A DNA stretch of 16,312 nucleotides from Auanema rhodensis (lineage: Eukaryota; Animalia; Nematoda), in contig OZ059901.1 in assembly GCA_964057225.1 (NCBI GenBank), forward strand, positions 1 to 16,312, in the 5' to 3' direction. The notes under the pieces were generated by a model. The model saw only the letters and a program-made list of their open reading frames with translations, was not told where the DNA came from and made no database searches. The number at the start of each line of letters is the position of its first letter. Position 1 is the first letter of the stretch. This document shows, in pieces, positions 2,003 through 11,913 of this stretch. A program made the position numbers and the translations under genes.

Positions 2003-2005
2003 TAA

Positions 2006-2062
2006 GCTATTATAGTTTAATTATAGAATATATAACTTGTAATTATAAGGTTTTGAGTAGCT
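2006..2062 (+). tRNA. trnT: tRNA-Thr (TGT)
   Basis: Acceptor GCTATT/AGTAGC; arm TATAA-CTTGTAA-TTATA. Confidence 0.93.
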
Positions 2063-3292
2063 TTGTTAGATTTTTTCTTAGTTTTAATGGTTTGATTTAT
2101 GAAGCCTGTTTATTTCTTCTTTTTTGTTTTGTTTTTTTCTTTAATCATTTTTAATAATATTTCTTGAGCGGGGGTTTTTATAGTAGTTGATTCGTATACA
2201 TTTGTATTGTTAATTATTATAAGGGTTTTTATTTTAGGTATTATTTTAATAAGAGAAAAGAATTATAATTTATTATTTTTATCTGAATTATTGGTTGTAA
2301 TTTGTATTTTGTTTTTTGTACCTAGAAATATAATGATATTATATATGTTTTTTGAATTATCTATGTTTCCTATTCTAGTAATGATTTTAGGTTATGGTTC
2401 TCAAATTGAGAAAATTAATTCTTCTTATTATTTAATATTCTATGCTGCATTCTGTTCTTTTCCATTTTTATTTGTTTATTTCAAGAGAGACTTTAGCTTA
2501 GTTTTTTCTTATTTTGATTTTTTTATTTCTTGAGAGATATTTTTTATTTTAAGTTTAAGATTTATGATAAAATTTCCAATTTATTTTTTACATTTATGAT
2601 TACCAAAGGCCCATGTTGAGGCTCCTACAACAGCTAGAATATTATTGGCTGGATTATTGTTAAAGTTAGGGACTGCAGGGTTTTTACGTATTTTAGGTAG
2701 AATAAATTTTATTCATAATAATGTTTGAATTTTGATTGCCTTTTTAGGTATGATTTTAGGGTCTTTTTGTTGTGTTTTTCAAAGTGATTCTAAGTCTTTA
2801 GCAGCTTATTCTTCGGTAACTCATATAAGATTTTTATTATTAGCTTTAGTATTTATTTCTATAAGGGGTAAAGTTAGAAGTTTAATATTAATATTGGCTC
2901 ATGGTTATACTTCAACATTAATATTTTACTTGATTGGTGAGTTTTATCATACTTCTTCTAGGCGTATAATTTATTTTATAAATAGATTCTTTAGATCTAG
3001 AATAATGATGGGTATTTTATTTGCAGTTGTATTCTTATCTAATAGAGGGGTACCTCCTTCTTTATCTTTTTTATCTGAATTTATTGTAATTGCTAATGGT
3101 TTAATGGTAGTTAAATCTATATTCTTTATAATTTTTATTTATTTCTTGGTTTCTTTTTATTATTCTTTATTTTTGATTACTAGTTCTTTAATGGGTAAGA
3201 AATTTATTAACTTTAATAGGTGAAATATCGGATTCTCTGCTCCTTTAGTATTCATGATATATAATATTTTCTGATTAAGAATTTTTTACTAA
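2063..3292 (+). CDS. nad4: NADH dehydrogenase subunit 4
   Basis: TTG..TAA, 1230 bp; [26 protein letters not shown] and LAAYSSVTH motifs. Confidence 0.97.
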
Positions 3293-3543
3293 ATTTATTT
3301 TTTTTTGTTTTATACTATTCTCTATACGATTATCGTTACTTTGGGGGTATAGTCTATACACATAGGATTTTAATGTCTCAAGGTATGCTGCAAGGTAGGT
3401 ACCTTGCAGAGGATATCGTGAAATGGAAAATTCTTTAGTACAAAAAATCTGGTCTTGACCAGAGAGATAGGGGGTCCTCTTCAGGAGACAACCTTCGAAT
3501 ATTTAATTTAAGAGTCAATTTGTTTGAAGAAGAAATCTCTTAA
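3293..3543. promoter_or_regulatory. Short non-coding region between nad4 and cox1 (251 bp), rich in hairpins and duplicated in the long NCR
   Basis: Lies between the nad4 TAA and the cox1 start; perfect inverted repeats CTGCAAGGTA-GG-TACCTTGCAG (3388-3409) and TCTGGTC-TT-GACCAGA (3448-3463); same position as the short NCR of other chromadorean nematodes. A regulatory role is inferred. Confidence 0.8.

Positions 3544-3553
<10 letters not shown>
3316..3553 (+). repeat. Dispersed direct repeat, copy 1 (partner 10125-10362)
   Basis: 238 bp ungapped match at offset 6809; mismatches only at 3323, 3514 and 3529. Confidence 0.97.
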
Positions 3554-5121
<1,568 letters not shown>

Positions 5122-8990: not shown

Positions 8991-8991
8991 T

Positions 8992-9046
8992 GGGGTTTTA
9001 TTTTAATTAAAAATATATGTTTTGCATACATAAGATCTAAGCTCTA
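8992..9046 (+). tRNA. trnA: tRNA-Ala (TGC)
   Basis: Acceptor GGGGTTT/AAGCTCT; arm TATGT-TTTGCAT-ACATA. Confidence 0.93.
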
Positions 9047-9050
9047 TAAA

Positions 9051-10240
9051 TTGTAATTTTTTTTTGAAAAAATATTTTATTTTTTTTTTGTCATTTTTGT
9101 TATTCTCCATACGATTATCGTTACTTTGGGGGTATAGTCTATACACATAGGATTTTAATGTCTCAAGGTATGCTGCAAGGTAGGTACCTTGCAGAGGATA
9201 TCGTGAAATGGAAAATATATGAATATTTTTTTTACTCAAAATTATAAATTTTTTTTGTAATTTTTTTTTGAAAAAATATTTTATTTTTTTTTTTGTCATT
9301 TTTGTTATTCTCCATACGATTATCGTTACTTTGGGGGTATAGTCTATACACATAGGATTTTAATGTCTCAAGGTATGCTGCAAGGTAGGTACCTTGCAGA
9401 GGATATCGTGAAATGGAAAATATATGAATATTTTTTTTACTCAAAATTATAAATTTTTTTTGTAATTTTTTTTTTTGAAAAAATATTTTATTTTTTTTTG
9501 TCATTTTTGTTATTCTCCATACGATTATCGTTACTTTGGGGGTATAGTCTATACACATAGGATTTTAATGTCTCAAGGTATGCTGCAAGGTAGGTACCTT
9601 GCAGAGGATATCGTGAAATGGAAAATATATGAATATTTTTTTTACTCAAAATTATAAATTTTTTTTTGTAATTTTTTTTTTGAAAAAATATTTTATTTTT
9701 TTTTTGTCATTTTTGTTATTCTCCATACGATTATCGTTACTTTGGGGGTATAGTCTATACACATAGGATTTTAATGTCTCAAGGTATGCTGCAAGGTAGG
9801 TACCTTGCAGAGGATATCGTGAAATGGAAAATATATGAATATTTTTTTTACTCAAAATTATAAATTTTTTTTGTAATTTTTTTTTTGAAAAAATATTTTA
9901 TTTTTTTTTTGTCATTTTTGTTATTCTCCATACGATTATCGTTACTTTGGGGGTATAGTCTATACACATAGGATTTTAATGTCTCAAGGTATGCTGCAAG
10001 GTAGGTACCTTGCAGAGGATATCGTGAAATGGAAAATATATGAATATTTTTTTTACTCAAAATTATAAATTTTTTTTGTAATTTTTTTTGAAAAAATATT
10101 TTATTTTTTTTTTGTCATTTTTGTTATTCTCCATACGATTATCGTTACTTTGGGGGTATAGTCTATACACATAGGATTTTAATGTCTCAAGGTATGCTGC
10201 AAGGTAGGTACCTTGCAGAGGATATCGTGAAATGGAAAAT
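9051..10240 (+). repeat. Tandem array of a ~205-bp unit, about 5.8 copies
   Basis: Core TATTCTCCATACGATTATCG starts at 9101, 9306, 9511, 9717, 9922 and 10125 (periods 205, 205, 206, 205, 203); the differences I can see are poly-T lengths. Confidence 0.98.
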
Positions 10241-10362
10241 TCTTTAGTACAAAAAATCTGGTCTTGACCAGAGAGATAGGGGGTCCTCTTCAGGAGACAA
10301 CCTTCGAATATTTAATTTAAGAATCAATTTGTTTGAAAAAGAAATCTCTTAAATCAATATAT
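10125..10362 (+). repeat. Dispersed direct repeat, copy 2 (partner 3316-3553)
   Basis: Last array core plus its unique 3' flank match the nad4-cox1 spacer at 235/238. Confidence 0.97.
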
Positions 10363-10465
10363 ATAAATATATACTAAATTATATTAAAATATATAAATTT
10401 ATATATAAATATATAAATTTATATATATTTATATATATAAATAATATATTATATATATAATATAT

Positions 10466-10745
<280 letters not shown>

Positions 10746-10782
10746 ACATATATATATGTATTATGTAATACATATATATATG

Positions 10783-10976
10783 TTATATCAATATTATAAT
10801 ATATATTTATATTATAATTAATATAAATATATATTATATTTATATATATATATAATATATATATATCACAAGATATATATATATTATATAGGTATATATA
10901 TATTTATATATATATATCAGTATATATACTATATATATACTATGTCTAGTATATATATATGTATAAATACGTATAT

Positions 10977-11008
<32 letters not shown>

Positions 11009-11164
11009 TATATATATGTATATATATATATATATATATGAACAATATAAATATATATTTTATAAACAAAATATATATATATATAGTATATATATATATA
11101 CATATATATAATATATTATATATATACACTATGTATAGTGTATATATATAATATATATTTAAAT
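10783..11164 (+). repeat. AT-rich ~380-bp direct repeat, copy 1
   Basis: Shares ordered landmarks with 11408-11784: TATCAATATT, TATAGGTATA, ATCAGTAT, ACTATGTCTAGT, AAATACGTA, TAAACAAAA, ACACTATGTATAGTGT. Confidence 0.93.
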
Positions 11165-11166
11165 AT

Positions 11167-11307
11167 ATTGATTTATATAAATTTATATCTATTTAGATAT
11201 AAATTTTCTATATAAATTAATCTCCGAAGTTATTCTAGAAGAATAACTGAGGGGTTGGGGTGAAACCCCATATTATTTATATAATATGGGGGCTGAGCCC
11301 CCATATT
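11167..11307. other. Cluster of stem-loops including a GC-rich island; candidate replication or transcription signal
   Basis: Inverted repeats at 11179-11206, 11228-11248, 11256-11270, 11266-11291 and 11283-11307; function is inferred. Confidence 0.7.
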
Positions 11308-11407
11308 TATAATATAACATATATTTATATATTTATATAAATATATATTATATTTTAAATATATATATAATATATATTTATATATGCTATGCATATATAG
11401 ATATATA

Positions 11408-11595
11408 TTATATCAATATTATAATATATATTTATATTTATATAAATATATATTATATTTATATATATATATAATATATATATATTTACAAAAATATATA
11501 TATATTATATAGGTATATATATATATTTATATATATATCAGTATATATACTATATATATACTATGTCTAGTATATATATATGTATAAATACGTAT

Positions 11596-11629
<34 letters not shown>

Positions 11630-11784
11630 TATATATATGTATATATATATATGCATATATAAACAATATAATATATATTTTATAAACAAAATATATATAT
11701 ATATAGTATATATGTATATACATATATATAATATATTATATATATACACTATGTATAGTGTATATATATAATATATATTTAAAT
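11408..11784 (+). repeat. AT-rich ~380-bp direct repeat, copy 2
   Basis: Same landmarks as 10783-11164, with several substitutions and small indels. Confidence 0.93.
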
Positions 11785-11803
11785 GTGTAATATTTATCTA
11801 GTT

Positions 11804-11858
11804 CAGTAAATAGTTTAATTTAAAATATAACGTTTGGGACGTTAAGATTCGTTACTGA
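11804..11858 (+). tRNA. trnP: tRNA-Pro (TGG)
   Basis: Acceptor CAGTAA/TTACTG; arm TAACG-TTTGGGA-CGTTA. Confidence 0.94.
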
Positions 11859-11913
11859 GAATTTTTAGTTTAATTTAGAATAATTCACTTACAATGAATA
11901 GGTTTAAAATTCT
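11859..11913 (+). tRNA. trnV: tRNA-Val (TAC)
   Basis: Acceptor GAATTTT/AAAATTC; arm ATTCA-CTTACAA-TGAAT. Confidence 0.94.

Follow-up and report, generated by a model that had tools for sequence, protein, structure and literature searches.

A nad4-cox1 spacer module that recurs in a tandem array at the edge of the control region in the mitochondrial genome of Auanema rhodensis

The window analysed here, a stretch of 16,312 nucleotides (nt) taken at its full length, is a complete circular nematode mitochondrial genome, which appears as contig 112 of a 181-Mb assembly and closes cleanly as a circle through trnF. Using ARAGORN in mitochondrial mode together with open reading frames in translation table 5, we found all genes on one strand and in the gene order of Caenorhabditis elegans, namely trnF-cob-trnL-cox3-trnT-nad4-(spacer)-cox1-...-nad5-trnA-(control region)-trnP-trnV-nad6-... 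The spacer between nad4 and cox1 occupies 251 nt of the coding strand (positions 3293-3543), and no tRNA gene adjoins it. The features that matter for what follows are collected in Table 1. The start of cox1, at the right edge of this spacer, reads ATT AAT ATR TTT AAA AAA TAT CAA GG in relatives. Four of these open the gene with ATT AAT ATA or ATT AAT ATG, whereas cox1 here opens with ATC AAT ATA; its start codon is either the unusual ATC or the ATA at 3550.

Table 1. Features of the nad4-cox1 spacer, the control region and their neighbouring genes in the window.
Feature	Coordinates	Strand	Description
trnT	2005-2063		Upstream of nad4
nad4	2064-3292	+	Stop codon TAA at 3290-3292; table-5 ORF ending IFY before the stop; C-terminus matches relatives; left neighbour of the spacer copy
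Left 23 nt of spacer	3293-3315	+	T-rich; decayed gapped similarity to the linker directly upstream of each control-region core
Spacer copy of core (116 nt)	3316-3431	+	37% GC; predicted three-way junction with 9-bp GC-rich hairpin; private T3323
Spacer copy of tail (122 nt)	3432-3553	+	Two more predicted hairpins and the conserved cox1-upstream block; its end overlaps cox1 over the gene's first 4-10 nt
cox1	3544-5121	+	1578-nt ORF; start ATC at 3544, alternative ATA at 3550; right neighbour of the spacer copy
trnA	8991-9047	+	ARAGORN (-mt); left neighbour of the control region
Tandem array, 5.8 x 205 bp	9051-10240	+	TRF, 98% matches
Control-region copy of tail	10241-10362	+	Only after the last core; A10323 and A10338 where the spacer has G
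AT-rich body of control region	10363-11808		8% GC; long palindromes and (AT)n runs; a module of ~345 nt present twice
trnP	11809-11867	+	ARAGORN (-mt); right neighbour of the control region

The initial annotation had reported that most of this spacer is duplicated within the control region, and an ungapped comparison bore this out. Positions 3316-3553 and 10125-10362 are identical at 235 of 238 nt without gaps, and the only differences are three transitions (3323 T/C, 3514 G/A and 3529 G/A), which leave 190 identical nt between the first two (3324-3513). Identity drops sharply beyond both ends of the match, and a repeat of this kind is far beyond chance. When the 238 nt were used as a BLAST query against the 181-Mb assembly, matches were found on the mitochondrial contig alone: the two full copies (E values of 1e-119 and 1e-115) and five more partial copies of 116 nt. 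No nuclear copy of the element was found in the whole assembly, nor any other paralogue of it within the mtDNA.

The two parts of the repeat differ in copy number. The part that we will refer to as the core (3316-3431) is present seven times in the genome, once in the nad4-cox1 spacer and six times in the control region (9101-9216, 9306-9421, 9511-9626, 9717-9832, 9922-10037 and 10125-10240), and the remainder, here called the tail (3432-3553), is present twice. The initial annotation saw only part of this structure, having overlooked that the first half of the repeat forms, with a linker, the unit of an array in which it stands six times. All six control-region cores are identical to one another and carry C at the site equivalent to 3323, so that the spacer core, with its T3323, differs from every one of them at 1 of 116 positions.

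This array opens the control region between trnA and trnP. Its unit consists of the 116-nt core preceded by a T-rich linker of 87-90 nt (9% GC), and the linkers vary solely in the length of their T runs. Possible sources of this linker were also considered: derivation from the 3' end of nad4 is suggestive only (1.9th percentile), and descent of its 3' half from a decayed trnA fragment, or from a unit seeded by microhomology, is not significant (6.6th percentile). On the spacer side, a gapped alignment of the 23 nt left of the core with the linker reaches a score that only 0.2% of genomic 23-mers attain; because the sequence is of low complexity, homology of 3293-3315 to the array linker is suggestive only.

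Altogether, the part of the trnA-trnP region that has matches to the spacer is its first 1.3 kb. The AT-rich body that follows (10363-11808) is single-copy, with no second copy elsewhere, and a search of it for remnants of genes or pseudogenes from the block between cox1 and trnA returned none, only low-complexity AT matches to the rest of the genome. The body has repeats of its own. A module of ~345 nt occurs twice (10821-11164 and 11442-11784, families D5 and D6), the two copies being 91-99% identical and ~621 nt apart, and TRF reports an 81-nt periodicity at 11304-11793. In addition, positions 11158-11175 on the minus strand form a perfect 18-nt inverted match to the cox1 start region (3541-3558); with an E value of 0.001 in AT-rich sequence, this match may be due to chance.

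To place the structure in independent data, we mapped Logan contigs (k=31) of four other libraries (X4, X5, X9 and X14) onto positions 2900-4100. In X4, X5 and X9, a contig runs from nad4 to exactly 3353 and carries T3323; position 3353 is the end of the last 31-mer that contains this spacer-specific T. A separate 108-nt contig (3324-3431) represents the collapsed core at a higher k-mer depth, and another contig, which begins at 3402 (X4 and X9) or 3484 (X5), continues into cox1 with zero differences and carries G3514 and G3529. The X5 graph breaks exactly at 3513/3514, as would be expected if a second path, with A, exists at this point, and in X5 and X14 a contig exits the core at 3431 into the array linker, where it forms a loose end. 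These contig paths, recovered from independent libraries, therefore indicate that the spacer copy and the array are both real. Of the two sets of junctions that the duplication reported by the initial annotation entails, the short-read contigs display nad4 to core, tail to cox1, core to array linker and the branch at 3514; the control-region tail with its two A residues and its junction with the AT-rich body are not displayed. Array copy number is not readable from contigs built at k=31, and although k-mer depth follows the expected order (core, then tail, then flanks), the ratios in X5 fall below 7x and 2x and so do not give copy numbers.

One possibility is that an assembly or polishing artefact produced one of the two copies, which would then be absent from the molecule. 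Repeats and AT-rich control regions are often misassembled, and both the number of array units and the control-region tail lie beyond what these contigs display directly. Nonetheless, we consider this explanation very improbable, given that three other studies or samples reproduce the paths from nad4 to 3353 and from 3402 or 3484 into cox1 with zero differences, that the deeper collapsed core, the branch at 3514 and the core-to-linker junction all recur in other libraries, and that the circle closes cleanly. Every run that contains the stretch (from organisms A and B, and as a minor component in the runs of organism C) is identical to the window over the 1.2 kb of 2900-4100. These runs may all derive from a single strain; they add support for the structure and no information on variation.

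Some features of these libraries concern the samples themselves. X9 and X14, which are labelled as organism C, contain a second cox1 mitotype that is ~11% divergent (32-33 differences in ~280-300 nt within 3616-4100) and that did not align on the spacer. Its depth exceeds that of the window mitotype by ~7-fold in X14 and ~80-fold in X9, and the window mitotype is present as an unchanged minor component, which suggests a mixed culture, contamination or index bleed. In X14 the tail breaks at 3515/3516, compared with 3513/3514 in X5, and still has G at 3514; this may reflect a different variant or a mixed sample. In X4 the k-mer depth is 2610 for the contig from nad4 to 3353 and 22.5 for the contig from 3402 through cox1, a 100-fold gap that is odd for one circle and may mean that the run is RNA or otherwise non-uniform.

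We next compared the spacer with that of relatives, which were found with a TGA-free piece of NAD4 (163 amino acids) at 63-87% identity. The nad4-cox1 spacer measures 39-41 nt in four of these contigs (L008, L012, L013 and L014) and 112-113 nt in two (L010 and L016), against 251 nt here. The lengths in the relatives are in line with the literature, which gives 96-112 bp for Caenorhabditis and 51 bp for Pristionchus (PMC6289777), 104 bp for C. elegans (PMC4334201) and 85-149 bp for Litoditis (PMC4760989). A second copy of the spacer was present in none of the six relatives' own contigs, including the near-complete L008 and L016, and a search of their spacers for homologues of the core or of the 5' part of the tail gave no significant match (p values of 0.04-0.8). 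The absence of a long spacer, of the duplication and of the array from these relatives therefore marks all three as lineage-specific. A hairpin look-alike in L010 (TGCAAGG...TTGCAG), considered among these candidate homologues, was not significant either.

Two of the relatives' sequences are unusual in their own right. L008 (GCA_003243445.1, QFQQ01000106.1; 14114 bp) is a near-complete nematode mtDNA that has been mis-binned in a metagenome-assembled genome labelled as the bacterium Citrobacter freundii. In L009 (7726-7961; 83% NAD4 identity), nad4 is followed not by cox1 but by a stretch resembling a tRNA, by T-rich DNA and by the end of the contig in poly-T, which suggests either a change in gene order or a break at a repeat.

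What the relatives do share with this spacer is recognisable in alignment as ~40 nt upstream of cox1, and this block bears on the direction of copying. When the relatives' whole contigs were searched with the 39-mer at 10317-10355 of the control-region copy, from which the terminal AT run was excluded, the site upstream of cox1 came out best in L010 (rank 1 of 2170 windows) and in L014 (rank 1 of 868); the top score also lies there in L013, and in L008 the site falls in the top 0.5%. The block thus belongs by origin to the cox1 locus, and finding it at 10317-10362 as well implies that sequence moved from the spacer into the control region. On this evidence the spacer is likely the source and the control region the recipient. 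Because the 238 nt form one contiguous, near-identical block, the simplest history is a single copy of nearly the whole spacer, in which case the core, too, would be native to the spacer, by parsimony rather than by demonstration.

On balance, we lean towards reading the arrangement as a young copy from spacer to control region that was then amplified in tandem. A copy of nearly the whole spacer, from the vicinity of the nad4 stop codon to the first bases of cox1, would have been placed in the control region at its edge next to trnA. There, the core plus its 87-90-nt T-rich linker would have multiplied into six head-to-tail copies, with replication slippage or unequal recombination as the probable mechanism, and the tail would have been kept by the last unit only. 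Three AT-ward point changes would have followed the copying; the spacer carries one of them and the control-region copy the other two. We infer the polarity of the whole 238 nt and this order of events from the comparisons above; two observations sit less easily with them, namely that no relative's spacer contains a detectable homologue of the core or of the 5' part of the tail, and that the published precedent runs in the opposite direction, from the D-loop to a new non-coding region (PMC6289777).

These same observations are what could be said for reversed polarity, in which the control region would have had the core at its 5' end from the outset, either alone or along with part of the tail, and this sequence would have been sampled into the nad4-cox1 spacer. 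The precedent involves the variable 5' part of the D-loop (PMC6289777), the spacers of relatives lack the core, and six of the seven core copies lie in the control region. Yet the control-region copy carries the cox1-upstream block, orthologous to the same spot in four relatives, so at least that part moved from spacer to control region; the contiguous identity over 238 nt would then need two opposite transfers, and the recipient site is not a tRNA cluster. We therefore regard reversed polarity as improbable, if less so than an artefact. A different route to the same arrangement is tandem duplication with random loss, whereby the segment from the spacer through trnA would be doubled and the second set of genes lost. 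This would put a copy exactly where it is found; the AT-rich body holds no gene remnants that would support it, a result with which complete loss is also compatible.

The choice that the initial annotation offered for the likeness of the two copies, between a very recent duplication and ongoing gene conversion, still stands: a young duplication would explain the three differences, and gene conversion may also have acted. Its further suggestion, that an identical centre with diverged edges is the trace of a conversion tract, proved weak: when 238 sites hold three differences, an uninterrupted match of at least 190 nt has a P value of ~0.03 (0.016 for an internal run), and the test was devised only after the data had been seen. 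Each of the three differences is AT-ward: a C>T change in the spacer copy, where all six control-region cores retain C, and two G>A changes in the control-region copy. In L008, the site that aligns with 3514 is a G. AT-biased mutation is reported for C. elegans mtDNA (10.1101/2021.05.03.442463). Simple decay of a young copy under such a bias would give AT-ward differences in one copy each. The mutation-accumulation rate in C. elegans is about 1e-7 per site per generation, and from three differences in 2 x 238 sites we infer that the copy may be 1e4-1e5 generations old (roughly 6e4).

A young duplication for which no conversion is required is thus the account that we are inclined to accept, if by no means firmly. 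Should the homology of the 23 nt at the left flank be real, divergence would be very uneven along the duplicate, and this would fit an older copy with a conversion tract better than a single young event. Such an older duplication, with the spacer and control-region copies kept alike by ongoing gene conversion over a tract of approximately 3316-3553, strikes us as a possible though rather unlikely explanation. The identical 190-nt centre, with differences near the edges, is what it would leave; identity drops abruptly at 3316 beside the decayed T-rich stretch; the six control-region cores are perfectly homogenised; and X-shaped recombination intermediates are abundant at nematode non-coding regions, so the machinery exists (PMC4334201). 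On the other hand, there are only three differences and they were tested after the fact, all are in the direction that simple decay predicts, and the left-flank similarity lies in low-complexity T-rich DNA. In addition, none of six relatives has the duplication, hence there is no sign of age, and the private T3323 of the spacer has not been converted by any of the six copies that bear C. Homogenisation by recombination is mechanistically plausible in nematode mtDNA and is not needed for the data. The preference expressed here concerns only how the copies stay alike and is separate from our judgements on reversed polarity and on an artefact.

The composition and predicted folding of the module are also out of the ordinary for this genome. 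GC content is 37% in the core and 33% in the tail, against 22% in the genome as a whole, and where mutation is AT-biased, so high a GC content in non-coding sequence speaks for either constraint or youth. As single-stranded DNA, the plus strand of the spacer (3293-3553) is predicted to fold at -34.3 kcal/mol (z of -5.0), a stability matched by 0 of 200 shuffles; the z values are -4.1 for the minus strand and -2.7 for the plus strand as RNA. On its own, the core is predicted to form a closed three-way junction with a 9-bp GC-rich hairpin, and as RNA its plus strand would be more stable than the minus strand by ~10 kcal/mol. In the closing stem of the control-region copies, the C at the site equivalent to 3323 would pair with G, a position at which the T of the spacer would form a wobble at best.

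Searches for known relatives of the element were negative. No Rfam family matched it, the sole sub-threshold match being a chance hit to a lncRNA (E value of 0.65), and ARAGORN in mitochondrial mode found no tRNA in the core. The exact 22-nt pattern of the core hairpin had 0 matches in metagenome and viral contigs; the closest NAD4 in the metagenome data is only 83% identical.

A structured spacer at a tRNA-less junction such as that of nad4 and cox1 is the usual candidate for an RNA-processing signal in the polycistronic transcript, and the nad4-cox1 spacer has also been proposed as a second origin of replication. In C. elegans, mtDNA replicates by a rolling circle without bubble origins, and neither non-coding region acts as a bubble origin; both regions show recombination junctions, and X-shaped intermediates are abundant there (PMC4334201). 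The native role of the module would probably be either processing at the nad4/cox1 junction or a part in replication or concatemer resolution. The six control-region cores may serve as extra processing or junction sites or confer a replication advantage, or they may be neutral products of slippage. A more far-reaching proposal is that the core is a working cis-element of the minor region, for RNA processing or for replication or concatemer resolution, that was recruited into the major region and amplified there for an advantage in replication or transmission, with recombination keeping both regions alike. We hold this to be doubtful. If it is true, no earlier case would exist in which both non-coding regions of a nematode mtDNA evolve in concert, and the module would offer a natural way of getting at what these regions do.

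Several known systems resemble this arrangement in part. In snakes, in parrots and other birds and in ixodid ticks, duplicate control regions evolve in concert, with paralogues grouping within species. The initial annotation had drawn this comparison, and like those systems the present one has two distant, nearly identical non-coding copies on one mtDNA with different flanking genes. The likeness goes no further: there the control region itself is doubled, whereas here the sharing is confined to the 238-nt spacer module and the AT-rich body occurs once, so the locus is not a member of the duplicate-control-region class.

Tandem arrays are also known from nematode AT-rich regions, for example CR1-CR6 of C. 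elegans and the 63/102-bp repeats of Meloidogyne. The array described here shares with them its head-to-tail repeats at one end of the major region and the variation in copy number and homopolymer length, but their units are AT-rich local sequence, whereas this unit embeds a GC-rich structured module that is apparently imported. The pseudo-nad5 elements of C. briggsae are dispersed mtDNA duplicates that seed heteroplasmic deletions. They too are dispersed direct repeats in a rhabditid mtDNA, of a kind that could mediate deletions or sub-circles, but they are decayed copies of a coding gene rather than a non-coding structured module. These elements are named in PMC6289777.

The closest known system is the D-loop sampling of Caenorhabditis and Pristionchus, described for the mtDNA of C. 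sinica, C. afra, C. brenneri, C. tropicalis and Pristionchus pacificus (PMC6289777). There, as here, a rhabditid mtDNA contains a dispersed, lineage-specific duplicate that links the major region, in its 5' part, with another non-coding site. In those species, however, the D-loop was copied into a tRNA cluster, making a new non-coding region (PMC6289777), whereas the partner here is the ancient, conserved nad4-cox1 spacer, which no tRNA adjoins, and the evidence, at least for the 3' end of the tail, favours the direction from spacer to D-loop, with tandem amplification to follow. Compared with the nad4-cox1 minor region of other chromadorean nematodes (NCR3; 104-109 bp in C. elegans), the spacer has the same position, a sequence that likewise forms hairpins, and a cox1-proximal block that relatives share. 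It differs in being 2-6 times longer than in the sampled or published relatives, in being GC-rich and in holding a 116-nt module, predicted to form a three-way junction, of which relatives show no counterpart and the control region contains paralogues. Our literature search found no description of such an arrangement between spacer and control region. Taken together, it is a new twist on a known type of mitochondrial rearrangement and not a new system.

The arrangement has consequences for the stability of the molecule and for its annotation. The 238-bp direct repeats lie 6809 bp apart and are a plausible substrate for large deletions or sub-circles; recombination between 3316-3553 and 10125-10362 would split the molecule into circles of 6.8 kb and 9.5 kb or cause a large deletion. 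The contigs analysed contain no such joints and no deletion product, although contigs are a kind of data in which joints would not show. For annotation, the locus serves as a warning that what looks like a repeat of the control region may have been imported from a spacer. What the two non-coding regions of nematode mtDNA do is not settled, and a structured, GC-rich minor-region module present seven times across both of them amounts to a natural experiment. It lets one ask whether the module marks RNA ends, whether it attracts recombination junctions, whether its copy number is variable or drives heteroplasmy, and whether gene conversion takes place in nematode mtDNA.
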